The notes beneath the pieces are model-generated. The model was not told where the DNA came from. It worked only from the letters and a program-made list of their open reading frames with translations, and did no database searches. Positions 36,306 through 58,056 of a stretch of DNA of 64,000 nucleotides are shown one piece after another. The translations under genes and the position numbers were made by a program. Where the stretch lies: positions 62,001 through 126,000 of IMG/VR virus record IMGVR_UViG_3300047157_000197; one strand, written 5' to 3'. Position 1 is the first letter of the stretch. Every line of letters starts with the position of its first letter.

Positions 36306-39300
36306 ATGAATAAACTTTCCAAATTTCTCGTAGAGAGTATAATGGAGGATGCGAATCCTATTAAAAAAACCGTAGTTGTCTATGTGGGTAGGTTTCAACC
36401 TATGCATAAAGGACATGCTGGTACTTACCAACACCTTGTCAAAAAGTTCGGTAAGGATAATGTTTATGTTGGTACATCTGATAAGGTACAATTACCTAAA
36501 TCACCTTTTAACTTTAAAGAAAAGGTAAAAATTATGACTACTATGTTTGGAATTCCAAAATCCAAAATACATAAAGTCAAGAATCCATACAAACCCACAG
36601 AAATTCTTAAAAAGTTTGATGAAGAAACAACTGCATTCGTAACTGTTGTTGGTGAGAAAGATAAAAACCGATTAGGTGGTAAATACTTTCAACCATATAA
36701 GGGAGAACCATCTGTGGGATATAGAGATGGTGGGTATGTTTATGCAGCTCCAATGACTGGTGGTTCAGTAAGTGGTACAGAAGTACGAAATGGATTATCA
36801 GTTGGTTCTGATGAACAGAAAAAGAATTTCTTTAAGAAACGAGCATATGGAAAGTTTAATGCAACTATTTTTAGTATGATTACTGATAAACTCGATGAGG
36901 GAATTGAAATTTCTAAAGAGATGATTGAGGAGTGGTTGTTAAACGAGGGTTCTAAGATGGGAAGTGGTCAAGCAGATGACGGACCTAACTTTATGTTTCC
37001 AAATTATGATGTTTTCTCTAAGATAAATGTAGATAGAGCAAAAAGAATTGGTTATGAAGTGGTAAATATGATTACTAACAAAGAGTTAGAAGATTACTAT
37101 GACCATCCAACATACCCAAATGGACCTGTTAAAGCAGTAACTCCATTTCCAGCAGGTGTACTTGGTACAACAACTGCAACTAACCAAGTTGATATCTATT
37201 CATCAGATGCTTATTCTAAATGGTTTAAGCACGTAACTCGTAAAGCAGCATTAGTTGGTTACGAATTAGTAAAAGGATTAGATACTAATAAAGATGAAAA
37301 AGAACAATCATTAGATTCTCAAAAAGGTGATAAAAAATCACAAGAAGAATACGAAGCATCTTTAAATGAAAATATAGTACTACCAATTAAAGTTGGCGAT
37401 ACCATTATGACTGGTAGATTTAAGAACAAGAAAACAGTTGTTAAATCAATCGGTAAAGATGAACATGGAATGCCAACAATCAATGGTAGAAAAGTAGTTA
37501 CCTTTAGAATGGTTAAAGAAGGATTCATTTCAGAACTTGCAGGAACAGAAGTAAAGTGTGAAAAATGTAATCACCAATGGGAAATCGAATCTGATGATAG
37601 TGAAAAGTATTTATGTCATTCATGTGGATGGGATTCTCAAAAAGGAGAATACGATTTTGATGCATTTGATTCGTGGCAAGAGAAAATGGGTATATCCGAA
37701 GATGTAGATGTAGAAGAAAGTAAAGGTAGATTAAGACCCGCCGCATTACTTAGAAGAAAAGCAGCGATGGCTGGAAAACGAGCTCAAATTGCAAGAAGGA
37801 GAGCAAGAACAATGAAGAGAAGAAAACCTCTTTCTAAACTTAAAAAGATTGCATACAAAAAAGCATACCTACAAGTTTATGATGAGTTTATGAAAGATTT
37901 GTTTCCTGGTAAAAAGAAAAATGAATTATCTATCGCACAGGCTAAAGTAGTTCATAAGAATGTATTAAGAAAAAAAGGTAGAGTTAGGAAAAGAGCCAAG
38001 TTTAGATTCTTGCCAGCATTAAGAGATGCAGAAGTACAGAAGTTTGGTAAAAAAGATGATACTAATGAATTGATGATTGGATATGCTGGACCTGAAGATA
38101 TGAAAAGGTTCGATAAAAGAAATAAGGAATATAGAAAAGATTCTGATTCTAATAAAGAATATCAATACGATACTATAAAGGAAGTTAATGAATTCTTTTA
38201 TATGGATTTCAAAAAGTATGTTTACAAAAACAGAAAACAAATCAATCAAAAACTAAAAGGATTATCTTATAGAAAAAAGGCAGAGTTCTTAGAGTTACTT
38301 TGGAAAAAACAAGTTGGTAAAGGATTCGGTAAAGATGCTGATGGTAGAGATATACATTACAAACTTAAATCAGATAAAGTAATTAAGGAATCGTTACCAA
38401 CAAAGGTAACAGATAAGTTTAAATCTGTAAAGAGTAGTAAACCTTCATCAGAAGCTGAAAAGGATTTTAATAAACATCATACATATTCATCATATGCAAA
38501 AAGAGGTTCAATAGCTGAACCAGATACAATTGATTTTGATGATGATGATAAAAAAGGTGGACATCAAGAGAAAGAAAAGGATACTAAGAAAAGAGGATAT
38601 GAACCAATTGAAGAAAGTTTAAAAGATTTAGGAATAAAAGATTTTAAATCGTTATTTAAGAAAATGCCTTCTGATTTACAAAAGAGAGTTTACAATCTAA
38701 AAAACTTTGGACAGAGAGTAGATAAACATCCTGAAGGAAATGTTCTTAAACACACAATCGTAGTTGTAAATCGTTCAATCAAAGAAGATGATATTGATAT
38801 TGCAATAGCAGCAATGTTCCATGATATAGGAAAAGATGAAACTGCAGGTATTCATCCAAAGAAAGGACACATTACACACTTTGGACATGAGAAAGTATCG
38901 GCATCTTTAGTAAAGAAGTATAAAAAGTTTATAGAATCAGTTGGTGGTAATCCAGCAAATGTATTTTACATTGTTAAAAACCATATGAGATACAAACAAC
39001 TATCTGTAATGACTCCTAAAAAAGTAAATAAACTAAAATCATTCAGAGCATTTGATAAATTAGGTAAATTCTCAAAACACGATAGAAGTGGATTAGATGA
39101 GAACAAAGCAACAAGAACTAAATTTAGTTTATCTGTACCATCTGATATTAAAAAACTTCAAAAGGCATTTAAAAAGAATAAAAAACAACTTTATGTTGTA
39201 GGTGGAGCAGTTAGAGATGCACTTATGGGTAATTCCCCAAAAGATTTCGATTTAACAACAGATGCAACACCAGAAGAAATGATTAAGATTGCTAAACAAG

Positions 39301-44963: not shown

Positions 44964-46700
44964 ATGGCAGATACTTCATTTTTTGGTAGATTAACGAAAC
45001 TCTTTCGTACTCAAGCAGTTGTTACTGTTGATAAAGAGGGTAAGAGAAAAGTAATTGATACCGATGAAAGACAACAAACTAACTTATCTTCTTTAAGAGA
45101 TAGGTACACGAAACTACAAAAAGGTTTCTATGAACAAGCAGGTGGTGCTCAATCAATGGCATACCAACAAGTTCGTAGAGAAGTTTTTAGAGATTTTGAT
45201 GCAATGGATAATGACCCAATATTAGCATCAGCTCTTGATATATACGCAGATGAATCAACACTAAAAAATGAATTTGGTGATACTCTTGGAATTGTATCTG
45301 ATAATCAACAAGTACAAGAAATATTAAGAAACTTATTTTATGATGTTCTTAATATTGAATTCAACTTATGGCCATGGGTAAGAAATATGTGTAAGTATGG
45401 AGATTTCTTCTTAGGTTTAGAAATCGCTGAAGGTAAAGGTATTGTTAACGTTACACCTCATTCAGTTTACAACACAGAAAGATTAGAAAGAACAGACCCA
45501 TCGAATCCAAACTCAGTAAAGTTTAAAATTACTGAAGACCCAAATGGAAAAGAACAATACGAAAACTTTGAAGTTGCTCACTTTAGATTATTAGCAGATA
45601 CAAACTGGTTACCATATGGTAAATCTATGATTGAGAATGGACGAAGATTGTGGAAACAATTATCTTTAATGGAAGATGCAATGTTAATCCATAGAATTAT
45701 GAGAGCACCTGAAAAGAGAGTTTTCAAAGTAGATATAGGAAACATACCTCCAACAGAAGTAGATAACTATATGCAAAGAATTATGAACAAGATGAAGAAA
45801 GTTCCTTTTGTTGATAGAAATACTGGTGATTACAACTTAAAGTACAATATGCAAAACCTAACAGAAGATTTTTATCTACCTGTTCGTGGTGGTGATAGTG
45901 GAACCAATATTGAAAATCTTGCTGGTTTAGAATATGCAAGTATTGAGGATATTGATTATCTAAAAAACAAATTATTTGCAGCTCTAAAGATTCCAAAAGC
46001 TTATTTAGGATATGAAGAAAATGTAGGTGGTAAAGCAACTCTTGCTGCAGAAGATGTTAGATTCGCAAGAACAATAGAAAGAATACAAAGAACCGTAGTA
46101 TCTGAATTAACTAAAATTGCAATAGTACATTTATATGCACAAGGAGTTACTGATTCAGAAATGACAAACTTTGAATTACAATTAGTAAATCCATCTTTTA
46201 TTTACGAACAAGAAAAATTAAATCTTTGGAGTGAAAAAATTAGATTAGCTCAAGATATACAAGGTCTTAATATGTTATCTAAAGATTGGGTATATGATAA
46301 TGTATTTAAATTATCAGATGGAGAATCCGATGAACAAAGAGTTCAGATGTTAGATGATTTAAAAGATAGATATAGATTCCGTTCTATTGAAGATGAGGGT
46401 AATGACCCTGCACAAGAAGATGAAGAGCCAGATGATATTGAGGAATCAATTGAAAAACTAAAACAAGAAATAAAAGATAAAGGTGGTAGACCGAAAGAAG
46501 GTGGAACATATGGAAAAGATAAACACCCATATGGAAGAGACCCTTTAGGAGATAAAGAAAGAAAAGATGCTAAAAGAAACACAACTTCTGAAGAAAAAGC
46601 TATACAATATATTAATGGTATTGCATCAAAAAGAAAATATTTACATGAATTAAAAGGTATGTTAGATGAGGAGAATATCCTCAAAGATACTGAAAATTAA
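44964..46700 (+). CDS. Portal protein (T4 gp20-like)
   Basis: LMEDAMLIHRIMRAPEKRVFKVDIGNIP, EDFYLPVRGG, ALKIPKAYL. Confidence 0.95.
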   Translation: MADTSFFGRLTKLFRTQAVVTVDKEGKRKVIDTDERQQTNLSSLRDRYTKLQKGFYEQAGGAQSMAYQQVRREVFRDFDAMDNDPILASALDIYADESTLKNEFGDTLGIVSDNQQVQEILRNLFYDVLNIEFNLWPWVRNMCKYGDFFLGLEIAEGKGIVNVTPHSVYNTERLERTDPSNPNSVKFKITEDPNGKEQYENFEVAHFRLLADTNWLPYGKSMIENGRRLWKQLSLMEDAMLIHRIMRAPEKRVFKVDIGNIPPTEVDNYMQRIMNKMKKVPFVDRNTGDYNLKYNMQNLTEDFYLPVRGGDSGTNIENLAGLEYASIEDIDYLKNKLFAALKIPKAYLGYEENVGGKATLAAEDVRFARTIERIQRTVVSELTKIAIVHLYAQGVTDSEMTNFELQLVNPSFIYEQEKLNLWSEKIRLAQDIQGLNMLSKDWVYDNVFKLSDGESDEQRVQMLDDLKDRYRFRSIEDEGNDPAQEDEEPDDIEESIEKLKQEIKDKGGRPKEGGTYGKDKHPYGRDPLGDKERKDAKRNTTSEEKAIQYINGIASKRKYLHELKGMLDEENILKDTEN

Positions 46701-46718
46701 TTAATCTTATATAATTTT

Positions 46719-46727
46719 ATATTTATA
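46719..46727 (+). promoter_or_regulatory. ATATTTATA putative promoter
   Basis: Intergenic copy. Confidence 0.6.
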
Positions 46728-46766
46728 TAAGGGAAATTTACTATATCATAATAGGAAAAAATAACG

Positions 46767-47639
46767 ATGAAAAAAATAAAACACTCAAAATTTAAGAATA
46801 CTGGTTTTCTTTTTGAGCTTTTAACTCGACAAATTACCATGGAAATACTAAATGGTAGTGAGGAAAAGGCTAAAGGAATAATTAAAGAATTCTATGGCAG
46901 AGGAACAGAATTATCTAAAGAACTTAGATTATTTAACCTTTTAATAAATGAAAGATATAATACAGAATCAAAGGCTGAAAAGTTTATTGATGCTATTTTA
47001 GAAGCACATACTAAAATAAATTATAAAACAATTCAACGAGAAAAATATAATCTTATTAAATCTATTAAAGAAAATTTTGAAATAAATAATTTTTTATCAT
47101 CTCCCGTAACAAATTATAAAATTTTAGCATCAATTCATAAATTATTTGAAGGTAAAAAGAATAATATTCTTGATGTTAAAGATGTATTTAATTCTAAAAT
47201 AACTATTGTAGAGCACATTTCATCGAATTCCCAAATTACAAAAAATGCTAAACAAGATAAATTAGTTGAAGAATACAAAAAACAAGAAAAAGACCTTAGA
47301 TTGTTGACATATAAGATTCTTGTTGAAACTTTTAACAAAAAATATACTACTTTAGATAAATCACAAAAAGGATTATTAAGAGAGTATATTAATAATGTTA
47401 CTAACACATCAAAGTTTAATGAATATTTTGAATCTCAGTTAATTGAAACAATCACATCTTTACATTCAATGTATAAAGGTATGAAAGATAAGATTACAAA
47501 AATAAAGTTGAGAGAAACAATAAATGTTTTGAAAAAACAGAAAATCGGTAAGAAAATTACAGATGAACAAGTTTCAGCTTTAATGATGTCTTATGAGTTG
47601 ATTAAGGAGATAAAAAATGTCAATGGAACAAAATCTTAA
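46767..47639 (+). CDS. Head-region helical protein (prohead core-like)
   Basis: KHSKFKNTGFLFELL N-terminus; position after portal. Confidence 0.5.
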   Translation: MKKIKHSKFKNTGFLFELLTRQITMEILNGSEEKAKGIIKEFYGRGTELSKELRLFNLLINERYNTESKAEKFIDAILEAHTKINYKTIQREKYNLIKSIKENFEINNFLSSPVTNYKILASIHKLFEGKKNNILDVKDVFNSKITIVEHISSNSQITKNAKQDKLVEEYKKQEKDLRLLTYKILVETFNKKYTTLDKSQKGLLREYINNVTNTSKFNEYFESQLIETITSLHSMYKGMKDKITKIKLRETINVLKKQKIGKKITDEQVSALMMSYELIKEIKNVNGTKS

Positions 47640-49164
47640 TAAATTTTTAGAAGAACTTATCCAAGAAGTTGAAAAAGAATTGGATGAGGCAACTGCAACA
47701 GGCAATGTAGCTGGGTATAATGTACCTGGTGCATTTTCTAATGGTGGTGCTAAAGATAAGAAGCGTAAGAAAAAGATTTCAACTCAATTCGGTATGAAGA
47801 TAGTTGGTAAGGTGGATGAAGATTCAGTAAACGAATCAATAATTACTGAAAAACAATTAAAAGGATTAGATGGAATTGATTCTAAAACTCATCTAAAAAA
47901 AATCTCAGATAAACAAAAATTAAAAATCATACAAGGGAATGGAAATATTATTTCATTTAAAGTTCCAAAGGGAAGTAGTAGAAATTTTTGGCAAGTAATA
48001 GTAAAAGGTAAAATTAAAAAAACAAGAAATCTTCAAGGATATGTAAGGTATATTGTACCTGGTAAAATGATAAATTCTCCTTTTTTTAAATCTGAGAAAG
48101 ATTTAATTAATGGTGTTGATTGGGATTCTGTTGAACAAACTCGTAGATTTAACGAATCAGTAAAAGAAGCAACATTCAGACCAAATTCAGGTACTATGAG
48201 TGGTGGTACATATGGTTTAGATAAAAGAAAGTATGAATTAAAAAGAGATGTTAAAGGTGTACAAATCGGTGATTATACAAATGTAACATTACCTAAAGGA
48301 ACTATTATATATAACTTACCAGGTGGAGTATTTGCACACCATCGTTCATTAAAAAGCTATGAAGCTGGAATGAATAAATATTTTAATAAACCTACATTCA
48401 GAGGAATATCAATTAGAAGAGAAAAAAATGTTATTCTTTCAATAGAAAAAAATTCAAAGATATTAGAATCAGTAAACGAAATATTAGTAATAGTAGATAA
48501 GTTTGATAAAAGGAAACAAGATTACGATAAAGTTTATTACCAAGATGGTGGTAAAAGACCAGGTGATGGAGATATCAACAAAGCACAAAAAGAATTTGCT
48601 AAGTTAAGTAAGAAACATAAAGGTTTAACTCTTATATCTGTTGATAGAAACAGTAAGATGTATGATGTAAATGAATCGGTAAACGAAGCAAAAAAAACTG
48701 ACCAATGGACACTTGATGTAATAGACCACTTAGAATACTTAAAATATCCAAAAAAAGATATAGATTATATAATGGATTTTGAGAAAAAGAAGATTAAAGG
48801 ATGGAAAAGAAAAAAAGTAAATCCAACTTCGGTGGGGCAACAATTAAATATTATTCTTAAAAAACTCAGAAGGAACGAAGCAATAGAATCAGTAAACGAA
48901 GCTAAAGTAAAAAGACCAGTAAATCGTTGGTTAGAATTAAAAAACGATGATTCAATGCATGCTCATAAGAAAATGGCTATGGGATTGAAAGAACTTAAAT
49001 ATCAACTTAGAGAAACAGAAAAATTCTTTAATTGGTATAATAAGATTAAAACAATGAATGAGTTAGATTCTGATAACTATTGGAAAAGAACAAACAAACA
49101 TATTTATAAGATAAAGGAGAGATTGATAAACATCGCTCGAACTATACAGGAGATAGAAAAATGA
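47617..49164 (+). CDS. Modular internal head polyprotein with five ESVNE-type linkers
   Basis: Linkers at 47821, 48154, 48466, 48673, 48886 separate unrelated 60-100 aa basic modules. Confidence 0.7.
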   Translation: MSMEQNLNKFLEELIQEVEKELDEATATGNVAGYNVPGAFSNGGAKDKKRKKKISTQFGMKIVGKVDEDSVNESIITEKQLKGLDGIDSKTHLKKISDKQKLKIIQGNGNIISFKVPKGSSRNFWQVIVKGKIKKTRNLQGYVRYIVPGKMINSPFFKSEKDLINGVDWDSVEQTRRFNESVKEATFRPNSGTMSGGTYGLDKRKYELKRDVKGVQIGDYTNVTLPKGTIIYNLPGGVFAHHRSLKSYEAGMNKYFNKPTFRGISIRREKNVILSIEKNSKILESVNEILVIVDKFDKRKQDYDKVYYQDGGKRPGDGDINKAQKEFAKLSKKHKGLTLISVDRNSKMYDVNESVNEAKKTDQWTLDVIDHLEYLKYPKKDIDYIMDFEKKKIKGWKRKKVNPTSVGQQLNIILKKLRRNEAIESVNEAKVKRPVNRWLELKNDDSMHAHKKMAMGLKELKYQLRETEKFFNWYNKIKTMNELDSDNYWKRTNKHIYKIKERLINIARTIQEIEK

Positions 49165-49442
49165 AAATAACAAGAGAAGCATTAAAAAACATAGTTAAAG
49201 AAACTATGATTGAAGAATCTGAATATCAAGAATTTTTCAAAAGAGCCTTAGAAAAAGCAGGTAAATCTATTCCTTCTATGTCTGATGAAGAAAAGAAGGC
49301 ATTCTTTAACAAGATTGAAAAAACTTGGAAAGGTAGAGGAGCAAAAAAAGAACAAGTTTCTGAATTAACAGATGCTCAGAAAAAACTACCACCAGCACTT
49401 CAAAAGGCAATAGAGAAAAAAGATAGTAAGAAGAAAGACTAA
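49161..49442 (+). CDS. Small prohead core-like protein
   Basis: MKITREALKNIVKE leader; YQEFFKRALEKAGKSIPSMSDEEKKAFF; upstream of protease as T4 gp67/68. Confidence 0.55.
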   Translation: MKITREALKNIVKETMIEESEYQEFFKRALEKAGKSIPSMSDEEKKAFFNKIEKTWKGRGAKKEQVSELTDAQKKLPPALQKAIEKKDSKKKD

Positions 49443-49443
49443 A

Positions 49444-49620
49444 GTGACTAAAAAAGAATTGTATGATATAATCAATGAGGAAATCGTTAACTTCAAAAAA
49501 GGAAAAATTAACGAAGACCTTAATGAGTCTGATAAAGATTTAATAAGAAAAATCATCAGACAAGAGGTATCAGCAATCTTTTTTGATTTATTTAAAAAAC
49601 GTAAAAGTTGGGGAGCATAA
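49444..49620 (+). CDS. Small prohead core-like protein (GTG start, not in ORF track)
   Basis: VTKKELYDIINEEIVNFKKGKINEDLNESDKDLIRKIIRQEVSAIFFDLFKKRKSWGA*, 58 aa; stop overlaps protease ATG. Confidence 0.65.
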   Translation: MTKKELYDIINEEIVNFKKGKINEDLNESDKDLIRKIIRQEVSAIFFDLFKKRKSWGA

Positions 49621-50201
49621 TGGCAAATTTATTAATAGAAACAAACCTATTCGAAGGTAGAGTAAACGAGGACGAGAGTGGAAGAACTATCGTTAAGGGT
49701 ATTTTACAAAGAGCAGGTGCAGAAAATCAAAATGGAAGGATATATCCTAAACCAATTTTGATGAGAGAAGCTAAGAAATACGAAACACTTATTAAAGAAA
49801 GAAGAGCACTTGGTGAATTAGACCATCCAGATTCTTCTGTAATCAATCTAAAGAATGTATCTCATAACGTAAGAGAGATTCATTGGGATAACGATGATTT
49901 AGTAGGAACAGTTGAGATATTACCTACCCCATCTGGTAACATCTTAAAAGAACTACTTAAAGCAGGAATCCTTTTAGGTATATCATCAAGAGGTATGGGT
50001 TCAGTAGAACCTCTATCAGGTGGTAAAGTACAAGTAGGTGAAGATTTTGAATTGATAGGTTGGGATTTTGTTTCTAATCCATCAACACATGGAGCATTTA
50101 TGACTCCGATGAACGAATCTGTTAACAAACAAGGTGAAGTTTGTAACGAGTGGTGTAAATCACAAGATTTAATGAGAGAAATTATAACAGAATTAAACTA
50201 A
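49620..50201 (+). CDS. Prohead protease (T4 gp21-like)
   Basis: NQNGRIYP, ALGELDHP, NVSH, GISSRGMGS, WDFVSNPST; likely start 49620 (track 49608). Confidence 0.95.
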   Translation: MANLLIETNLFEGRVNEDESGRTIVKGILQRAGAENQNGRIYPKPILMREAKKYETLIKERRALGELDHPDSSVINLKNVSHNVREIHWDNDDLVGTVEILPTPSGNILKELLKAGILLGISSRGMGSVEPLSGGKVQVGEDFELIGWDFVSNPSTHGAFMTPMNESVNKQGEVCNEWCKSQDLMREIITELN

Positions 50202-50204
50202 GTT

Positions 50205-50393
50205 ATGGCATTTGATATAAAAAAATATTTAGGTGATAATGATATTAAATTAGGAACAGTAACAAGAAACGTTGCAAGTGTTCCATTTAAAGGTGGTCAC
50301 AACGATATAAGAAAAACTAATTATGATGTTAAGATTACCGAAGATGGTAAACTTGATTTATATACTCTTAAAAAGGAGACAAAGAAATTATGA
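50205..50393 (+). CDS. Small head-region protein
   Basis: 62 aa, MAFDIKKYL N-terminus resembling capsid MANFDLSKL. Confidence 0.55.
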   Translation: MAFDIKKYLGDNDIKLGTVTRNVASVPFKGGHNDIRKTNYDVKITEDGKLDLYTLKKETKKL

Positions 50394-52204
50394 TTAAACT
50401 AACTGATTTATTACAAGAACAAGATTCATTTACTGCAATCAACAAAAGTAGTGGTAACGTAACTGCATTTAAATCAAAAGATGCAAGAGACTCTGCAGTT
50501 AAATCAGGTACTCATGATAAAAATAAAGATTCAGAAGATGATGATGATAAAAAAGATACTCCTAAAGTAAACATCTTTAAAAGGGATAATGATTCCGACT
50601 CAAAGAAAAATCTTCAGAAAATGAAAAAAGATAAAAGTGGAACTCAAAAATCTTTATTTCCTGATGAGAAACCAGATTCAAAACCAACTGGTGATTCTAA
50701 TAAAATAAAAGACCCAAAAGGAATGTCAAAGGTTGTTCCTAAAGATATTGGAACAGACCCTGATAAGATGGAAGCTTGGCTATTTGATGAAGATGGTGCA
50801 ATTGGAGATGGTCAAAGTTTCGGAATGAGTGATAAAAACGCAGATGAACTTTACAATTTACATGGTAAATATGATGATGCAAAAAAAGCTGGTGATAAAA
50901 AAGAAATTGAACGAACTAAGAAAGAGTACATTGAATTTGTTTATAACAATTTAGAAAAAAATCAAAACAAACCAAAAGAACCTGAAACAAACGATTATTG
51001 GAACAAGGATAAAGATGCACCTAAGAGAGATGATAACACCGATACACAGATAGATGATGTTCAAAATAATATTGGTGATTTAGATGGCGATGAAATGAGA
51101 GATTATGCAGAATCAGATATATTCCCATATCTTAAAGGGAAAGATTTAGAAATTGCAAAATCATTAGTAGATGATATTGAAGATTCTGGTTCAGATTTTG
51201 TTAGAAGTGCTGATGTAAGGGCAGATTTAAAAGATTTATTTGATAAGAAAATGACTTTAGATTCTCCAAAAATAAAACCTTTTGCTCCAAAACCATCTAA
51301 AATTGTACTAAAGAACCTTGATACATTAGGTGACATGGCGATTGGTGATAAACCAGCATTAAATCCAAAAGATATGGGTGATGCAGAATATGAAAGAACA
51401 ATGTTACGAATGATACATAATTCATTAGAAGATTCAAACTATCATACGGCTAACAGATTTATCTTTGCAGATTTAGAAGGTAATAAAGAAAAAAGAAAGA
51501 AAGCTGATTTCAGAAATGCTCCAGATTTAGGTTCGCCTGATTATAAAGATTGGACAGAAAAAAACACTATCTATACAAAAGATTTTAATGCAGGATTTAA
51601 TAGAAAAAATGAAAGAGATGATTTATTTGATAAAGTTTCAATTGAAGCTGCTCAAAAATCAGGACATGATGGTGGACAAATTCTTGCTGGTTATCTTGTA
51701 AAACTAAGAAAAGATGGTAAAGAAGATTTAGCAAATAGAATTCAAAAATCATTTGAAGATGCTGAAAAATCTATGGATGAGGGTAAACTTAGTATCACAT
51801 CTCTTGTTAAAGAATCTATATTTATAAAAAATTTAATCAACGAAGGAACTCGTTCTCAAGTTGGTGTGATTGGTAGAAATGGTAAGATTGTTTCTGCATA
51901 CGTTCATTTCGATGGTTATCCATCAAATATGAAACCAGGTTTAAAACATCACATGAAGAACGAAAAAGATGTTCTTAAACTAATCAAGATGGGTGGGGCA
52001 AGAGGAATCTTTGATGATAAAGAAATTGAATATTACAAAAAAAGTGGTCAACCATTAAAAGGTGATTCTAAAGATATTAAATCATATATTAACGATGCTG
52101 GAGTTGAGGCTGGAGCAGAATATGTATATTTATACAATATAAAGGATAAGAAATGGTATTTCGCCGATGTATATGGTAAAAAAGAACTAAAAAAATTATT
52201 TTAA
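50390..52204 (+). CDS. Internal head polyprotein with C-terminal TRS...HFDGYP domain
   Basis: MIKLTDLLQE leader; D/K-rich middle; LINE/GTRSQVG...YVHFDGYP...AEYVYLY C-terminal module. Confidence 0.65.
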   Translation: MIKLTDLLQEQDSFTAINKSSGNVTAFKSKDARDSAVKSGTHDKNKDSEDDDDKKDTPKVNIFKRDNDSDSKKNLQKMKKDKSGTQKSLFPDEKPDSKPTGDSNKIKDPKGMSKVVPKDIGTDPDKMEAWLFDEDGAIGDGQSFGMSDKNADELYNLHGKYDDAKKAGDKKEIERTKKEYIEFVYNNLEKNQNKPKEPETNDYWNKDKDAPKRDDNTDTQIDDVQNNIGDLDGDEMRDYAESDIFPYLKGKDLEIAKSLVDDIEDSGSDFVRSADVRADLKDLFDKKMTLDSPKIKPFAPKPSKIVLKNLDTLGDMAIGDKPALNPKDMGDAEYERTMLRMIHNSLEDSNYHTANRFIFADLEGNKEKRKKADFRNAPDLGSPDYKDWTEKNTIYTKDFNAGFNRKNERDDLFDKVSIEAAQKSGHDGGQILAGYLVKLRKDGKEDLANRIQKSFEDAEKSMDEGKLSITSLVKESIFIKNLINEGTRSQVGVIGRNGKIVSAYVHFDGYPSNMKPGLKHHMKNEKDVLKLIKMGGARGIFDDKEIEYYKKSGQPLKGDSKDIKSYINDAGVEAGAEYVYLYNIKDKKWYFADVYGKKELKKLF

Positions 52205-52214
52205 GGAGAGTACA

Positions 52215-52967
52215 ATGATTAAATTAACCCAACTAATGAACGAATCAGAAGAAAAGAGACCTCTTTCTAATGAAGTTAAAAAACACTTCTTAGAAATCGT
52301 TTCTACTTACAACAAGTACCAAGAATCAATGGATAGAAAATCTGATATTACTCAAGTAGCAGAAACACTTGGTGGTATTACAGAAGCAGCTAGAACATTA
52401 GCAATTCACGAAGGAGATGATTGGTTTGATAAACACACCATTAAAAGAAACATGAGTGAATTGGATAAGTTGGGTAAACAATTCGATAAAGTTGCTCTTG
52501 AAGCTAAGGCACTTGACCAAAGAATGGGTGGATTATATGAAGATATGGGACACATACTTTCAAGGTACTACAAGATTGGTGAGATTTCAGAAGACCAGAT
52601 GAAAGAACGTTTAGGAATGAACGAATCTAAAGAAGATTGTGGTTGTGGATGTAATGGAACAACTCCAGGTGGATGTAATGAATCTTTAAACGAAGAACCT
52701 GTTGCAGTATCAATGAGAAACGATGATGGTTCTATCACTACTACAATAAAAGAAGTAAATGAATTAAATGAACAAGAAACTGCATTATATGAGTTTGGCC
52801 AAAAGGTTGAAACTCTAATGGAGAAAAATTGTCCAACTGATTCAAGTAAATGGAGTTCTTACAAATCACAAGCAAAAAAGAAATTTGATGTTTATCCATC
52901 AGCATATGCTAATGGTTGGGCAGCTAAGAAATATAAAGCAGCAGGTGGAGGATGGAAGAAATGCTAA
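52215..52967 (+). CDS. Internal head protein with C-terminal YPSAYANGW module
   Basis: MIKLTQLMNE leader; helical domain; CGCGC; LME/KNCPTD...YPSAYANGWAAKKYK. Confidence 0.6.
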   Translation: MIKLTQLMNESEEKRPLSNEVKKHFLEIVSTYNKYQESMDRKSDITQVAETLGGITEAARTLAIHEGDDWFDKHTIKRNMSELDKLGKQFDKVALEAKALDQRMGGLYEDMGHILSRYYKIGEISEDQMKERLGMNESKEDCGCGCNGTTPGGCNESLNEEPVAVSMRNDDGSITTTIKEVNELNEQETALYEFGQKVETLMEKNCPTDSSKWSSYKSQAKKKFDVYPSAYANGWAAKKYKAAGGGWKKC

Positions 52968-53983
52968 TCAACGAAAGATTTAAATCTCCAAACAAAGAAT
53001 TTGAAAAAGTATTCAATCTTTTTAGAAAGAAAGATTACTTTGATGAAAAGAGTCAGGTCAAGAAAAAACAAGAAGAGTTTGTACGATTCTTGAAAAAAGG
53101 TGACCCTATGGCAACCAAAGTTTTCAAACAAAATAAAGAGGATATGAAATCTTCATTATCTTTTATTGAAGATATGGTAATGGACTATAATAAGAAAAAT
53201 CATTTTGAAGCTTTTCAAATATTTTCAAAAGCAGTAAATAATATTGAAATGAAAGATTCTAAATCAGCTGAAAAATCTGGTAACTTCATTAAAAGTAAAA
53301 TTCACAACAACTCACAAAAATACTCATTGGCAATTTATAGTGCAATTCGTAAACAAAAATTTAACAACTATAAAGATGTTCATAAAGATGTAGATGAATT
53401 GGTTTCTAAGAACGAATCAGTAAACGAAGGTAAAACAATATCTTCTTCTAAAATATCTATGATGGGTGCAAGAGTTCTTAATAAAATTAGCATCGGTACT
53501 ATATTTAATACAGAAGATGGAAAGTATGAAATTACGGATTATGGCCGACAGGCAAATGCATTTAAAGAATTTGAAGCAGAACATAATGGTAAAAAAGTAA
53601 AGGTAAAATTAACTGCAATGTATGGTGTTGAGTTAGAAGTAACTAACGATGTACGCAGCACTAGATTTAATAAAAAAGTAAAGCTAAATTCTATTATTTT
53701 AGAATCAGTAAACGAAGGTAAGAAAAGATTCAAAAGACAAGATGGTATTGGTAAAGCAAAATACACAATCTCTTTCCATGATGGAAAAAAGAAACATAAA
53801 GATGGTAGTGATTTCTTTGATATCAAAATTTTCAAAAACAAAAAAGATTTAAGTGATTTCGTTGGAACACTTGCAAAACAAGGATACAAACTAACAAGAG
53901 AATCAGTAGTTACTGAAGGTTATCAGTATTTCAAAGGCAAAATGGCTAGAGACCTTAAAGGTGACTCTGGTCGTCAAGTTTAA
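52952..53983 (+). CDS. Modular internal head polyprotein with three ESV(N/VT)E linkers
   Basis: Linkers at 53414, 53702, 53900; likely start 52961 after GGAGG; last module appears to continue in +1 frame. Confidence 0.7.
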   Translation: MEEMLINERFKSPNKEFEKVFNLFRKKDYFDEKSQVKKKQEEFVRFLKKGDPMATKVFKQNKEDMKSSLSFIEDMVMDYNKKNHFEAFQIFSKAVNNIEMKDSKSAEKSGNFIKSKIHNNSQKYSLAIYSAIRKQKFNNYKDVHKDVDELVSKNESVNEGKTISSSKISMMGARVLNKISIGTIFNTEDGKYEITDYGRQANAFKEFEAEHNGKKVKVKLTAMYGVELEVTNDVRSTRFNKKVKLNSIILESVNEGKKRFKRQDGIGKAKYTISFHDGKKKHKDGSDFFDIKIFKNKKDLSDFVGTLAKQGYKLTRESVVTEGYQYFKGKMARDLKGDSGRQV

Positions 53984-54368
53984 AAAAGGAACTAAGGTTA
54001 CTTTAGAAATTCAGCCCAACTATTATATTATTTATGGACCTAATAGAAAACAAATCAGTTTAGATAAACAAGATTTTGATTCAGAGACATTACAACAGTA
54101 TGTTATATATGAATCAGCAAACCAAGAAGTACCACAAGGATATAATCCAGTGGTAGAAGATAAAAAACAAATCAAAGATTTAGTAAAAAAAGTTAAACAC
54201 GAAAAACTATTTTACGATGTACTTGATACCATGGAAAAAAAGTATGGTAAAAACAAATACAGAATTTGGTTAGAAAAATCCCTAAAAGATTTTGGAGTAA
54301 ATCCAAAACATTACGATTACAGAACCAATGCTGGTGCAGAAGAAAAATTATTCCAATTAGGTAAGTAA
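53961..54368 (+). CDS. Probable frameshifted continuation of 52952-53983
   Basis: GTG start without SD; removing one T at ~53980 gives DSGRQVKKGTKVTLEI; contains IYE and VVE linker-like sites. Confidence 0.5.
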   Translation: MTLVVKFKKGTKVTLEIQPNYYIIYGPNRKQISLDKQDFDSETLQQYVIYESANQEVPQGYNPVVEDKKQIKDLVKKVKHEKLFYDVLDTMEKKYGKNKYRIWLEKSLKDFGVNPKHYDYRTNAGAEEKLFQLGK

Positions 54369-54712
54369 TGAGATTACAAAATATCATAGACGAGATATTT
54401 GAAGAAACCACAAATGAAGATTTGAGAAACTGGTTTAAATCCAAGTGGGTTAACATCGGTAAAAAAGATAAAAGTGGTAAACACCCCCCATGTGGTACAA
54501 GTGGTAAGAAAAAAGGATATGCAAAATGTGTTCCTGCCAAGAAAGCCGCATCTATGAGTAAGAAAGAAAAAGAATCTGCAACTCGTAGAAAAAGAGCAGC
54601 ACAAAACAAATCCAATAGAGGTGGTAAATCATCTGCAGGACAGGGTAAAAAACCTATCAATGTTTCTACACATACCAAAGGAAGAAAATCAGGAACTGGT
54701 AAAGGTTCTTAA
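54368..54712 (+). CDS. Small basic head-associated protein
   Basis: MRLQNIIDEIFEETTNE leader then DLRNWFKSKW...CG...KCVP...RRKR. Confidence 0.6.
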   Translation: MRLQNIIDEIFEETTNEDLRNWFKSKWVNIGKKDKSGKHPPCGTSGKKKGYAKCVPAKKAASMSKKEKESATRRKRAAQNKSNRGGKSSAGQGKKPINVSTHTKGRKSGTGKGS

Positions 54713-54763
54713 ATTAAAATTATATATACTTATATAAAATAACGTTACACTAAAATTAGGAGA

Positions 54764-55072
54764 ATGAGTAAAAAGAAATCAATTGTTTCTGTTAAGGTAA
54801 TCAAAGGAGATATCAACAGAGCATTAAAAAAATTAAAAAGAAGAACCATTGACTCTGGTCATCTTCTAGAACTAAGAGAAAGAAAATATTATATAAAACC
54901 CACAACAGTTCGTAGAAGAGAAAAACAATTAGCAGTTAGAGAACAAGAAAAGGAAACTATACTTGGTAAAATAGCAGATGGTGATACTAAATTAAGATTT
55001 TATACTAAAAAACCTAAAAGAAAAGGTAACAAAAACGATAAAAATAAGAATAATGAAAAAAAAGATAAGTAA
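54764..55072 (+). CDS. rpsU: Phage-encoded ribosomal protein bS21 with basic C-terminal extension
   Basis: VSVKVIKGDINRALKKLKRR...G.LLELRERKYYIKPTTVRRREK matches bS21 core. Confidence 0.85.
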   Translation: MSKKKSIVSVKVIKGDINRALKKLKRRTIDSGHLLELRERKYYIKPTTVRRREKQLAVREQEKETILGKIADGDTKLRFYTKKPKRKGNKNDKNKNNEKKDK

Positions 55073-55099
55073 AATTATCTTTTAAAATATATATTCTAT

Positions 55100-55108
55100 A
55101 TTTATATA
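55100..55108 (+). promoter_or_regulatory. ATATTTATA putative promoter of scaffold-capsid operon
   Basis: Intergenic copy ~150 nt upstream of ATG 55256. Confidence 0.65.
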
Positions 55109-55114
55109 CTGAAT

Positions 55115-55227
55115 AACCTACCCAATGTAGGTTCTTACTAAGGTTAATGAATACCCACGATTCTTATGTGAGGTGACTAAAAAACCGTTTTACAATAATC
55201 ATTATTGAAAATCCCTAAATATTTTCA
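55115..55227 (+). promoter_or_regulatory. Structured 5' leader of scaffold/capsid operon
   Basis: Hairpins AACCTAC/GTAGGTT (55115-33), ACCCAC/GTG-GGT (55153-74), CAATAA/TTATTG (55193-207), TGAAAAT/ATTTTCA (55206-27). Confidence 0.45.
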
Positions 55228-55255
55228 CGAACACAAAACGAAAAGGTAAACTATT

Positions 55256-56413
55256 ATGGCAAACTCAAATTTGTTAAAAGAAGCTATCGCTGATGCAAAA
55301 GCTGTTAGAGAAACTGCAATTGCAAATGCTAAAATAGCTTTGGAAGAAGCTTTTACACCTCGTTTACAATCTATTCTATCTCAGAAACTTCAACAAGAAA
55401 TTGAAGAAGGTGAAGAGGAAGAAGAAAAGGTTGAAGAAAACGAAGTAGTAGAAGAAACTGAAACAGTAGTAGAAGCTGAAGTAACTGAAGACGAAGATAA
55501 AGAAGAAGTTGAAGAATCAACTGAAACTGAAACTGTATCTGAAGAAGAAGTAACTGAAGGTGAAGACGCTGAAGAAGAAAAAGAAGTAAAAGAAGAAACT
55601 GAAGTTGTTGCTGAAGAAGAATCAGAAGAAGAATCGAAAGATGAAGTATCTGAGGAAGCTGAAGAAGAAGAACAAGAAGTATCTGAAGAAGAAGATGAAG
55701 ATGAACTTGACTTAGAATCAATCATTAAAGAATTAGAAGCTGAATTAGACGAAGACTCTCACGAGGAAGAAGCTGATGAAGTTGAAGAAGAACTTGATGG
55801 TGAGGAAGAAGAACAAGTATCTGACATCGCATCTGATGAAATCGAATCTCACGAAGATGAACATCACTCTGAAGAAGAAGTATCTGAAGAAGGTGAAGAA
55901 CACTCCGAAGAAGAAGATGACATAGATGAAGAAATCGACTTAGACGAAATCCTAAAAGAAATGGGATACGGAGAAGAAGATGAATCTGATGAAGAAGAAG
56001 TTTCTGAAGAAGTTGTAGAAGAAACTAACGAACTTGAAGAAGTAAAATCAGAGCTTACAGAAGCAATGAGTACAATCAAGGAACTTAAATCTACAATCAA
56101 CGAAGTAAATTTATTGAACGCTAAATTACTTTACACTAACAAACTATTCCGTTCTTATGATTTAAACAATGACCAGAAAATGAAAGTTGTTGAAACATTA
56201 GATAGAACTAAGAATGTTAGAGAAGTAAAATTAGTATTTAGTACATTAGCAGAATCACTAAAAATTGGTGGAACTGCAAAAAAACAAAAACAAGCTAAAA
56301 TCAACGAATCATTCGCATCTAAACCAGTTGCAAGTACTGCTCCTACAAAGGAAGTAATTACTGAATCAACTAACACGATGGCAGAAAGATTTAAGAAATT
56401 AGCAAATATTTAA
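55256..56413 (+). CDS. Prohead core scaffolding protein (T4 gp22-like)
   Basis: LLKEAIADAKAVRE N-terminus, long Glu-rich tract, EVNLLNAKLLY, RFKKLANI end; precedes capsid gene. Confidence 0.85.
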   Translation: MANSNLLKEAIADAKAVRETAIANAKIALEEAFTPRLQSILSQKLQQEIEEGEEEEEKVEENEVVEETETVVEAEVTEDEDKEEVEESTETETVSEEEVTEGEDAEEEKEVKEETEVVAEEESEEESKDEVSEEAEEEEQEVSEEEDEDELDLESIIKELEAELDEDSHEEEADEVEEELDGEEEEQVSDIASDEIESHEDEHHSEEEVSEEGEEHSEEEDDIDEEIDLDEILKEMGYGEEDESDEEEVSEEVVEETNELEEVKSELTEAMSTIKELKSTINEVNLLNAKLLYTNKLFRSYDLNNDQKMKVVETLDRTKNVREVKLVFSTLAESLKIGGTAKKQKQAKINESFASKPVASTAPTKEVITESTNTMAERFKKLANI

Positions 56414-56448: not shown

Positions 56449-58056
56449 ATGGCAAATTTTGATTTATCTAAATTAATGGAAGGAAAGAACCCACAACAAG
56501 TGATGCTAGCTGAAACTAGAGAACTTAAAGGTAAATGGGAACAAACTGGACTTCTTGAAGGTTTAGGAGAGAGAGAACAATCACAGGTATCTGTATTGTT
56601 AGAAAACCAAGCAAAACAATTGCTTGATGAAGCTACTGCTACCGGTACAGGTGGTGGAAATGAAGAGTGGAGTGGAGTAGCTCTACCATTAGTAAGACGT
56701 ATCTTCGGTGAAATTGCATCGAAAGAATTCGTTAGTGTACAACCAATGAACTTACCATCTGGACTAATCTTTTATCTAGATTTCAAATACGGTTCAGCTC
56801 AACCAGGAAACCCATCATTCAGCGGAAATTCACTTTTCGGTGGTACAGGTGCAGACCTTGGTTCAACTGATTCTGCTGTAAATGGTCTTTATGGTGAAGG
56901 TAGATTTGCATATACTGCAAATGACGTATCTGATTCAGTAGGTAATAGTGATTTAACTATCGCTTCTGCTTCTTGGGCAGATGTAAATTATGATGCATCA
57001 TTATCAGCTTCAGTTGCTGATGGTTCATTAGCTAGTATTAAATTTAACGCATCTGAATTAGTAAGACCTGATTTAGACGGTGTAAGAAGTTTTTACATCT
57101 CATCTTCAGATTTCGCATCTGCAGATTCTTATTACCCAGCACACTCTAGTGTTTCTGGTGTTGTAGGTTCAGAAGTAATTACTACATTCGCAAAAATCTC
57201 ATCTTTAGGTGGTGATTTAGCAGTTAAACATTCACAACAACCAATCGCTGCAAACAGAGGAGACTTCGAAGATGCTTCTCCATCTGAACCTGCAACTGAT
57301 ATAGGTATTCCAGAAGTTGATTTAGAACTTAAGTCTGAAGCAATTGTTGCTAAGACAAGAAAACTAAAGGCTGTATGGACACCTGAATTGGCTCAAGATT
57401 TAAATGCATACCACAGTATTGATGCTGAGGCTGAATTAACTTCAATGTTATCTGAGTACATCTCATTAGAGATTGACCTAGAAATCCTTGATATGTTAAA
57501 GTCTAACGCGTTAACAACTGAATACTGGTCTGTATCTTTAGGTGAAGAGTATGATGCAAACACAAGTGGTTGGGTTGCTGGAAGTAATTCTGCAGCTTAT
57601 ACTAAAAACTCTTGGTTCCAAACTTTAGGAGCTAAGTTGAATAAAGTATCTAACAAGATACACCAATTAACTTTAAGAGGTGGAGCTAACTTCGTTGTTG
57701 CTTCTCCTGACGTATGTACAATTTTAGAATCTATTCCAGGATTTGCAGTTTCAGCTGATAAAGATGCTTCATCTTTCGCTGCAGGTGTAACTACTGTTGG
57801 TTCTTTATCAAACAGATATACAGTTTACAAGAACCCTTATATGACTTCTAACGAAATCTTATTAGGATTCAAAGGAAGTAATTTCCTTGAGACTGGAGCT
57901 GTTTATGCACCATATGTACCGTTAATTATGACTCCACTTGTATATGACCCAACTAACTTTACACCAAGAAGAGGTGTAATGACTAGATACGCTAAGAAAA
58001 TGGTAAGACCAGAATTCTATGGTAAAATCTATGTTAAAGATTTAAACAACTTATAG
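56449..58056 (+). CDS. Major capsid protein (T4 gp23-like)
   Basis: LLENQ, LPLVRR, VQPMNLPSGLIFYL, KTRKLKAVWT.ELAQDL.A.H.IDAEAEL, YAPYVPL, GVMTRYA. Confidence 0.97.
   Translation: MANFDLSKLMEGKNPQQVMLAETRELKGKWEQTGLLEGLGEREQSQVSVLLENQAKQLLDEATATGTGGGNEEWSGVALPLVRRIFGEIASKEFVSVQPMNLPSGLIFYLDFKYGSAQPGNPSFSGNSLFGGTGADLGSTDSAVNGLYGEGRFAYTANDVSDSVGNSDLTIASASWADVNYDASLSASVADGSLASIKFNASELVRPDLDGVRSFYISSSDFASADSYYPAHSSVSGVVGSEVITTFAKISSLGGDLAVKHSQQPIAANRGDFEDASPSEPATDIGIPEVDLELKSEAIVAKTRKLKAVWTPELAQDLNAYHSIDAEAELTSMLSEYISLEIDLEILDMLKSNALTTEYWSVSLGEEYDANTSGWVAGSNSAAYTKNSWFQTLGAKLNKVSNKIHQLTLRGGANFVVASPDVCTILESIPGFAVSADKDASSFAAGVTTVGSLSNRYTVYKNPYMTSNEILLGFKGSNFLETGAVYAPYVPLIMTPLVYDPTNFTPRRGVMTRYAKKMVRPEFYGKIYVKDLNNL

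Follow-up and report, generated by a model that had tools for sequence, protein, structure and literature searches.

The window, by which we mean the whole stretch of viral DNA analysed (64,000 nucleotides of a 276-kb genome), comes from a clade without a cultured member. It contains a head module in which a portal gene (Portal_T4, 44964-46700) and a gp23-like major capsid gene (56449-58056) bracket a prohead protease gene (49608-50201). Between the same two genes lie two arrays, A and B, which an earlier note, made from the letters alone, had read as chains of unrelated modules separated by the pentapeptide ESVNE. That reading holds: nine modules were assigned in the window, and they belong to nine different, mutually unrelated sequence families. 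The codons for ESVNE occur as one exact 15-mer, GAATCAGTAAACGAA, at 48466, 48886, 53414 and 53702, four copies in two ORFs; the repetition of this DNA across both genes, also claimed in the earlier note, was confirmed position by position and extends to in-frame variants at 52680, 53900 and 54111. All exact and one-mismatch copies are on the + strand and in frame. The features are as follows.

47617..49164, + strand: array A, a 515-aa ORF with leader, four cargo modules and tail
47617-47835, + strand: acidic leader module of array A
47821..47835, + strand: junction 1 (DSVNE, one mismatch), the leader end; similarity to the relatives L005, L017, L004 and L019 stops at 47835
47836-48168, 48169-48480, 48481-48687 and 48688-48900, + strand: cargo modules of array A
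48154..48168, + strand: junction 2 (ESVKE, one mismatch)
48466..48480, + strand: junction 3 (ESVNE, exact 15-mer)
48673..48687, + strand: junction 4 (ESVNE, TCG variant), which travels with cassette A4
48886..48900, + strand: junction 5 (ESVNE, exact), directly before the conserved tail module
48901-49161, + strand: conserved helical tail module of array A
49161..49442, + strand: 93-aa head-module protein, cargo-free in the window; in relatives, homologues form ESVNE cassette arrays that reach ~450 aa
49608..50201, + strand: prohead protease of the T4 gp21 family (Peptidase S77) by profile matches, the presumed junction-cutting enzyme
52215..52967, + strand: 250-aa head-module protein whose N-terminus resembles a targeting leader; it contains one ESLNE junction (52680-52694)
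52952..53983, + strand: 5' ORF of array B, comprising first module, B2, B3 and the 5' part of a singleton cargo module
52952-53428, 53429-53716 and 53717-53917, + strand: first module, cargo B2 and cargo B3 of array B
53414..53428, + strand: array B junction (ESVNE, exact)
53702..53716, + strand: array B junction (ESVNE, exact)
53900..53917, + strand: second-type 18-nt junction ESVVTE, GAATCAGTA followed by GTTACTGAA
53961..54368, + strand: 3' ORF of array B in another frame, which completes the singleton cargo module and continues through a decayed junction into the conserved last module
54111-54125, + strand: decayed junction ESANQ, just before the conserved last module

Array A bears out the prediction of conserved first and last modules around a variable middle: in 57 unique relatives leader and tail are kept, and zero to five variable cargo modules lie in between. 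The bare leader-plus-tail chassis (149-159 aa) is common among relatives and is also found, cargo-free, in Microcystis phage Mel-JY01; its junction is predicted to be disordered (pLDDT <50 at residues 59-78), with helical parts on either side. Array B is a single ORF in all relatives, and in the window a +1 frame change splits it, so frame is not preserved by every event; the relatives' similarity to it restarts at 54128-54156, near the conserved last module. Its ESVVTE junction has its first 9 nt in common with the 15-mer. The arrays gave zero matches among 50,697 cultured phage records.

The system is wider than these two genes, because at least five head-module genes, including that of the 250-aa protein, have cassette-bearing homologues in relatives. 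Another variable head-module gene, a 604-aa ORF, has its breakpoints elsewhere. L/I-x-Glu sites are present in the helical leaders at the N-termini of several head-module ORFs (MIKLTDLLQE, MIKLTQLMNE, and FLEE and LDE in array A); the likeness to a targeting propeptide is one of pattern, not homology. The window also encodes a gp46/SbcC-like recombination nuclease.

The presumed processing enzyme is encoded about 0.4 kb downstream of array A. Its ORF matches Pfam PF03420 (91.2 bits, cut-off 27), PHROG 207 (E=5e-49) and the T4 gp21 structure PDB 5JBL (E=1.8e-15), and in the last alignment its His (ELDHP) and Ser (ISSRG) stand opposite Ala of the crystallised chain, at what are presumably the mutated catalytic positions. 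All 111 junction types have Glu at P1, almost all have V, I or L at P3, and 65 of 95 ESVNE sites have A or G at P1'. For T4 gp21 the cleavage motif is L/I-x-E, and a Glu-Ala bond was the earliest site to be identified (PMC9026906); the junction sequence is compatible with a hydrophobic-x-Glu site for the neighbouring gp21-type (S77) protease. Every cargo instance lies inside a long ORF, immediately following a Glu. The cargo modules (52-190 aa) have a pI of 9.2-10.1, compared with a median of 5.5 for other window proteins, and judged by a dN/dS of 0.2-0.4 they are under purifying selection. No family or fold was recognisable in them: against family profiles, 66 module representatives matched just four domains, all of unknown function, and one PHROG annotated as cytidyltransferase matched three representatives. 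We infer that the cargo is cleaved free, packaged and injected, with a putative role in counter-defence.

Why should a presumed cleavage site be conserved as DNA? With up to two mismatches the 15-mer is matched 11 times in the window, where shuffles predict 0.21 matches; given ESVNE, the window's own codon usage predicts this spelling with a probability of 0.042, and Asn is AAC at 7/7 junctions, compared with 27% genome-wide. Among relatives the exact 15-mer stands at 77 of 95 ESVNE sites and in 57 of 66 ESVNE junction types, where 4% is expected, figures beyond the codon bias that the earlier note had allowed for. The loci are metagenome assemblies and phylogenetically non-independent, and those that a 15-mer scan brought in are ascertained by that 15-mer. 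The 15-mer persists in phages with ~50% identity in portal and capsid proteins, in which 27 of 48 ESVNE sites are exact once each locus' ascertaining site is removed. The junction shows 0.03 synonymous codon differences per codon, compared with 0.23 for the conserved module beside it, and the dS of modules is 0.25-1.1. Unrelated spellings occur at some junctions, mostly those following the leader. Nucleotide conservation is confined to 15-16 nt, and the flanks are not conserved; 15-16 bp is short for efficient homologous recombination. Promoter-like sites are about as numerous as chance predicts (62 against 65.7), and the only terminator-like site lies away from the joints.

The gain, loss and exchange of modules break where the earlier note had placed them, at the 15-mer. 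The relative L002, with a backbone 99.6% identical to the window, diverges exactly after 48480; for L005, L017, L004 and L019 the similarity is interrupted from 47835 to 48882, and sixty similarity segments of relatives begin at 48882-48898, at junction 5. Of 986 internal similarity endpoints, 63% fall no more than 6 nt from a junction; random placement gives 6%. The 86 unique arrays resolve into 68 module families, eight of them found in both arrays, with module order permuted. Array B of L083 (backbone 84-89% identical) contains cassette 48465-48688 at 99.1% identity. Cassette 53702-53908 is 100% identical in L098 (backbone 82%), the identity ending at 53908, right behind the 9-mer shared by both junction types, and 99.5% identical in L013 (backbone 87%), there within array A. 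Cassette B2 lies with both its junctions (53411-53717) within array A of L002, at 98.7% identity. These alignments indicate that single cassettes move between arrays and between lineages, and they show recombination at the junction; that the 15-nt identity is what enables it, we infer.

The explanation that we consider likely combines acceptor genes for in-frame cargo, protease-released modules and exchange at a shared junction. The genes between portal and capsid of this distant T4-like phage would encode proteins of the prohead interior, and several head genes would have been turned into acceptors of in-frame cargo cassettes, each cassette pairing a small basic domain of about 50-190 aa with an ESVNE junction at its end. 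The conserved leader, perhaps together with the tail module, may bring the whole chain into the prohead core, where the gp21-type protease would cut behind the Glu of each hydrophobic-x-Glu junction, so that every domain becomes a free internal protein of the head, associated with the DNA and able to exit with it. Crossover or template switching could join junctions of one array, of different arrays or of co-infecting phages. Because the junction is an identical 15-16-nt block in the same frame everywhere, such crossovers would add, delete or swap whole cassettes with the frame intact, and recurrent exchange would hold the junction base-identical across the clade and give rise to a common cargo pool. 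Exchange driven by short homology is most likely.

Might the arrays instead be uncut multi-domain head or internal proteins, in which ESVNE is a favoured flexible linker, recombination is rare and illegitimate, and selection spares breaks in linkers? The predicted disorder around the junction would suit a linker, and selection against breaks within domains would likewise cluster breakpoints there. However, this account, which we regard as unlikely, predicts neither the invariant Glu, hydrophobic P3 and small P1' that match the specificity of the adjacent protease's family (PMC9026906) nor base-perfect synonymous conservation across deep divergence, and permuted module order speaks against a fixed multi-domain architecture. 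Still less likely, in our judgement, is that selection on mRNA or translation, for example for accurate decoding of the cleavage site, keeps the identity and that recombination is incidental. AAC is reported to be the more accurately read Asn codon, and the window's five AAC GAA TCA (Asn-Glu-Ser) tricodons all lie in junctions or cleavage-site-like contexts. Yet presumably cleaved sites that are no cassette joints are spelled otherwise: in EELNE, DNINE and DDINE, as at the cargo-less chassis junctions, Asn is AAT; the protease's own NESVNK uses TCT and GTT; and LDEATATG, present in the array A leader and in the capsid protein, differs in codons between the two genes. Accuracy gives no rationale for TCA over TCT or GTA over GTT, and the breakpoints fall within the junction block itself.

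We would give about as little weight as to the translational account to a true site-specific system, in which a dedicated nuclease or recombinase encoded elsewhere in the genome recognises the 16-mer. The sharp bounds of the 15-16-nt block, its retention across deep divergence and its shortness for general homologous recombination all favour such an enzyme, but profile scans of the head module and a comparison of ten further large window ORFs with PHROGs yielded no candidate, the block has no dyad symmetry by inspection, and one crossover apparently fell inside the 9 nt common to a different junction type, as homology-driven exchange gives. That the mosaic arrays are chimeric assemblies joined at the repeat is very improbable: all relatives are metagenome contigs, but a 15-16-nt repeat should be shorter than usual assembly k-mers, the arrays all stay in frame with conserved ends, and the same architectures recur in independent samples (L010, L011 and L012; also L004, L017, L019, L020 and L022).

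The preferred reading, in-frame cassettes exchanged at a shared junction, has a more ambitious version that is possible but that we hold with some doubt, namely that a clade of marine-type T4-like phages draws on one in-frame domain pool, that exchangeability is itself selected and thereby keeps the joint constant to the base, and that the cargo is packaged in the head, injected and rapidly replaced in an arms race with host defences. Such a pool would contain dozens to hundreds of domains and reach across core proteins down to ~50% identity, and the joint would be protease site, frame-keeping recombination joint and cassette address in one. If the preferred reading is true, the packaged set is diversified by plugging domains into an existing polyprotein, without a new gene that would have to bring promoter, start site and targeting leader along, and a joint identical in every cassette suffices; this would account for the rapid turnover of packaged internal proteins. 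It would also supply a simple mining rule, a cassette between two ESVNE junctions, leading to hundreds of candidate packaged proteins in metagenomes, and a natural blueprint for filling T4-type heads with more than one foreign protein. More generally, it would offer a clear case of synonymous-site identity across deep divergence, apparently for a DNA-level reason.

The earlier note called the arrays integron-like, and this stands as an analogy only. Like integrons, they would line up promoterless exchangeable units behind one upstream expression signal and share a cassette pool; integrons, however, have an integrase and structured attC sites, whereas the units of the arrays are in-frame protein segments. 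Profiles detected no recombinase or integrase in 12 of the ORFs from 44964 to 56413 and in 10 other large window ORFs of the 276-kb genome, and no structured attC-type inverted repeats were found at the joints, where the conserved block is only 15-16 nt without conserved flanks.

Other phage systems share individual features with the arrays. The PeSLs of T4-type genomes are also short conserved repeats that flank novel, function-unassigned genes, and in both cases close relatives differ by insertions, deletions and replacements whose breakpoints are at the repeats; but PeSLs are intergenic, with a promoter and a terminator hairpin, and their cassettes are genes, whereas the array joint is 15 nt of hairpin-free coding sequence and its cassettes are protein domains. 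In the gp38 adhesin of T-even tail fibre genes, in-frame Gly-rich motifs likewise part hypervariable segments, with exchange in or near the motifs; those segments are loops of a single folded domain whose core is formed by the motifs (PMC3157838), unlike the independent, unrelated domains and presumed cleavage site of the arrays. Polyvalent proteins, too, combine many unrelated domains in one polypeptide encoded beside head genes and are proposed to be packaged, injected and sometimes proteolytically released, but they carry recognisable enzymatic domains (MPTase, ART, ParB-like, primase and others), often with their own metallopeptidase (PMC5512222). The arrays consist of small orphan domains, each delimited by a conserved DNA joint and presumably released by the prohead protease. 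phiKZ, 201phi2-1 and SPN3US use a gp21-related protease to process many proteins of the head interior behind the Glu of short motifs, with no cassette structure, nucleotide-conserved joint or module exchange reported (PMC9026906, PMC10052503).

A further parallel is offered by the T4 internal proteins. IPI, IPII, IPIII and Alt are Lys-rich, are carried by a leader into the prohead core and are released by gp21-type cleavage after hydrophobic-x-Glu; the cargo set is highly diverse among related phages, the targeting part is conserved, and fusions to the leader are packaged (PMC9026906, PMC3012670). The arrays resemble them in their small basic proteins and, by analogy, in a putative targeting leader, packaging and cleavage. 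They have no sequence similarity to these proteins (no Pfam or PHROG match to IPI, IPII, IPIII or Alt, and no tblastn match in cultured phages), and whereas the T4 proteins are separate genes with a leader each, the arrays place many unrelated cargos in one ORF behind one leader, with internal sites. We found no earlier description of such cassette arrays in the literature; what is new in them is a variant that combines two known themes, the leader-targeted internal proteins of T4 and modular shuffling at short repeats.

Two coding loci in the head module of this phage, array A (47617-49164) and array B (52952-54368), are chains of protein modules separated by a 15-mer, GAATCAGTAAACGAA, that codes ESVNE. 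Exact copies of this junction stand at 48466, 48886, 53414 and 53702 and one-mismatch copies at 47821, 48154 and 48673, as the earlier note had listed them; all seven are in frame, and with up to two mismatches allowed the window holds 11 matches against 0.21 in shuffles. There are also in-frame variants: an ESLNE at 52680, in a 250-aa ORF between the arrays, an 18-nt junction coding ESVVTE at 53900-53917, and a decayed ESANQ at 54111. The modules are indeed mutually unrelated, the nine assigned in the window falling into nine different families.

The window (G+C 30%, 48 of 49 long ORFs on the same strand) is drawn from a 276-kb contig in IMG/VR, and profile and ORF analysis identifies 42.9-58 kb as the head module of a distant T4-like phage. 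The nearest cultured relatives of the capsid protein are in Microcystis phage Mel-JY01 and Flavobacterium phage immuto (51-53% amino acid identity), with which the window has its gene order in common. The genes most relevant here are:

5539-8697, gp46/SbcC-like recombination nuclease subunit
within 42.9-58 kb, large terminase
within 42.9-58 kb, T4-type portal (PF07230)
47617-49164, array A: leader, four cargo modules, conserved helical tail
49608-50201, S77/gp21 prohead protease, 0.4 kb downstream of array A
52952-54368, array B
55256-56413, very acidic scaffold-like protein
within 42.9-58 kb, gp23-like capsid protein

Other features of the region deserve mention. The scaffold-like protein is full of internal repeats and extremely rich in Glu; relatives conserve only its two ends, and the repetition produces many off-diagonal DNA matches between them. 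The motif LDEATATG, followed by a Gly-rich stretch, is common to the array A leader (47680-47720) and the N-terminal region of the capsid protein (56620-56660), and could mark a protease site or core-binding motif that the two proteins share. In relatives, a 604-aa ORF (50390-52204) and a 93-aa ORF (49161-49442) have conserved ends and a variable middle or tail; the breakpoints of the former (~50420-50640, 51005 and 51834) are not ESVNE joints and fall within a Lys/Asp/Glu-rich region of low complexity. ORFs 52215-52967 and 54368-54712 have sub-threshold matches to DUF5872, as does one cargo module of a relative. A radical SAM domain protein lies at 25276-26724 amid structural-looking genes, and a 1735-aa ORF (36306-41513), immediately upstream of the terminase region, has a cytidyltransferase-like N-terminal part and a tRNA nucleotidyltransferase domain at residues 960-1240. 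A scan for tRNAs gave no hits.

Relatives in IMG/VR, at least 107 for array A and 28 for array B, reveal how the arrays vary. Array A ranges from 149 to 690 aa: its acidic leader (window residues 1-73) is constant, its 87-aa helical tail (residues 429-515) is present in nearly all relatives, and between them stand zero to five cargo modules, the most frequent form being leader plus tail alone, which we call the chassis. Conserved ends with variable middles had been predicted, and relatives of both arrays follow this pattern. This chassis looks like the ancestral form, cargo having entered it at an internal site of the cleavage type, because Mel-JY01 has it without cargo and immuto has a cargo-less 74-aa leader-like gene at the same position. 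AlphaFold models the chassis with low confidence overall (mean pLDDT 58); in the model, the cleavage-type site falls at residues 59-78, a low-confidence stretch that links a helix at the N-terminus to a helical hairpin at the C-terminus. A tblastn search of both arrays against cultured phages gave no match.

Segmenting 86 unique arrays by a broad hydrophobic-x-Glu pattern, since strict ES[VIL]NE-type splits merged modules and over-linked families, yielded 267 modules in 68 families, 42 of them singletons; eight families are common to the two arrays, and module order is permuted. At least five head-module genes have homologues in the clade with cargo delimited by ES[VIL]NE: array A, the 93-aa and 250-aa ORFs, array B and a 129-aa ORF. 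Homologues of the 93-aa ORF also contain back-to-back ESVNE-ESINE junctions (30 nt; L066:11341-11370, and likewise L071, L073 and L074), which look like an empty cassette slot. Array B of relatives is one ORF, equivalent to window ORFs 52952-53983 and 53961-54368; the window has a +1 frame change at 53913-53983, inside a singleton cargo module (53918-54110). Mutation, assembly error or a programmed shift may be responsible; an IMG/VR search returned the frame-broken module from the window's own contig only, and inspection revealed no convincing slippery site for a programmed frameshift.

Why should a protein junction be so uniform as DNA? Codon bias is the obvious candidate, and the earlier note had allowed that it might explain part of the identity. 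Given window codon usage, however, this spelling of ESVNE is expected with a probability of 0.042, and it is found at 77 of 95 distinct-context ESVNE sites in relatives identified by protein similarity; AAC accounts for 27% of Asn codons, yet occupies all seven junction Asn positions. The comparative data are all metagenome contigs, whose sequences are related by descent. Counting each junction type (left family/right family) once leaves the exact 15-mer in 57 of 66 ESVNE types, with 20 more types one base away (ESINE, ESLNE, ESVKE and DSVNE, for example). Synonymous differences per codon are 0.03 at the junction against 0.23 in the conserved tail module next to it, so that codon bias alone can be rejected; the module families themselves have dS of 0.25-1.1 and dN/dS of 0.2-0.4, and information content is limited to the 15 nt and the next G. 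A purely translational explanation is disfavored by internal controls: the cargo-less chassis junctions EELNE, DNINE and DDINE use AAT for Asn, NESVNK in the protease itself uses TCT and GTT, and the LDEATATG codons differ between the leader and capsid genes. Among the IMG/VR matches listed for the exact 15-mer, almost all are in frame within long ORFs, the number per contig is often two to six, and 79 of 118 new loci, ascertained by the 15-mer, have head genes, including phages at 47-55% portal and 52-57% capsid identity. In these distant loci, 27 of 48 additional ESVNE sites are exact once the ascertaining copy is discarded.

The junction is also where arrays break, as had been proposed for the gain, loss and swapping of modules. 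Locus L002, which over 6.5 kb matches the window backbone at 99.6% identity, diverges directly after 48480, the final base of a 15-mer, and its array A contains window cassette B2 (a cargo module with its junction) together with both flanking junctions (53411-53717) at 98.7% identity. In four other loci (L005, with a backbone 99.4% identical, L017, L004 and L019), similarity to the window stops at 47835 and resumes at 48882, one different cassette taking the place of four window cassettes. Over all loci, 60 similarity segments begin at 48882-48898 and 29 finish at 47820-47843; across all pairs of arrays, segments of at least 85% identity have 986 internal endpoints, of which 63% are no more than 6 nt from a junction (random positions, 6%), BLAST endpoints being approximate to a few bases. 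Assembly chimerism was considered and rejected as the main explanation of the mosaic arrays.

Identity levels indicate that single cassettes have moved laterally, and recently: window 53702-53908 is 100% identical in L098 (flanks 82%) and 99.5% identical in array A of L013 (flanks 87%), and array B of L083 (flanks 84-89%) has window 48465-48688 at 99.1% identity. Homologues of window cassettes A3 and B2 adjoin in L100, and B2 recurs at 92% protein identity outside a head context in another lineage, whose contigs are 160-178 kb long. In that lineage (L088:4893-9799), a cluster away from head genes holds a 1072-aa ORF containing several [LV]-N-E sites beside the cassette-bearing ORF, and smaller ORFs starting with a leader-like ...F..[IL]NE. 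The C-terminal part of the window's 1735-aa ORF has a 39%-identical homologue adjoining the cassette-bearing ORF of this lineage. A cassette is most aptly defined as a domain together with the junction at its C-terminal end, because variant junctions tend to accompany the left-hand module: ESLNE closes family 14 in two contexts, and the TCG variant of cassette A4 is retained in L083. Another junction type, ES[VLA][VI]TE, to which window 53900-53917 belongs, is used in another lineage and has GAATCAGTA in common with the 15-mer; the L098 match stops directly after the 9-mer common to both types, as expected for a crossover inside it.

The most economical mechanism would be short-homology recombination or template switching between joints, carried out by the phage itself with its T4-type machinery for recombination and replication. 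The gp46/SbcC-like nuclease at 5539-8697, preceded by an ORF (4387-5529) that may be its gp47/SbcD partner, bears on the presence of such machinery. Joint-to-joint exchange would explain frame preservation, exact breakpoints and the movement of cassettes between arrays and genomes, and repeated crossovers, together with the wider spread of cassettes carrying canonical joints, could have made the joints homogeneous to the base. The label "integron-like" in the earlier note holds only as an analogy, because profile scans of 12 of the ORFs from 44964 to 56413 and of 10 other large window ORFs matched no integrase and the arrays have no attC-type site; a dedicated enzyme for the exchange is an unlikely alternative. 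A promoter and terminator scan gave hits at chance level.

What might the arrays do as proteins? T4 gp21 cleaves after L/I-x-Glu (PMC9026906), and a short N-terminal leader, which gp21 removes, takes T4 internal proteins into the core; foreign proteins fused to it become packaged (PMC9026906, PMC3012670). Here, P1 is Glu without exception and P3 nearly always V, I or L across junction types, P1' is mainly A or G at ESVNE sites, and several neighboring ORFs begin with leader-like helices ending in such hydrophobic-x-Glu sites. The cargo modules have pI values of 9.2-10.1, whereas the median of the other window proteins is 5.5; in being basic they resemble the T4 internal proteins, which are Lys-rich and contact DNA (PMC3012670). 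Given these parallels and the adjacent protease, we propose that each array would be targeted as one chain and, once inside the prohead, cleaved into its modules; these may then be injected and may act against host defences. Both whole arrays and 66 module representatives, scanned against Pfam and PHROG, returned almost nothing; the commonest cargo family is modeled by AlphaFold as three strands then a helix (64 aa, pLDDT 84), and a PDB fold search with this model gave no significant match (best E-value 0.2).

We found no description of nucleotide-conserved cassette arrays delimited by cleavage sites in the literature covered, which was incomplete and does not prove novelty. Polyvalent proteins (PMC5512222) and the multi-site processing of phiKZ-like phages (PMC9026906, PMC10052503) offer further comparisons. 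The nearest systems are T4 internal proteins with their capsid targeting sequence, gp38, with in-frame exchange at conserved motifs (PMC3157838), and gene shuffling by PeSLs, promoter and terminator hairpin elements of T4-type genomes (PMC2839356, PMC4122927); the arrays differ from PeSLs in that their joints have no promoter or hairpin and are not intergenic.
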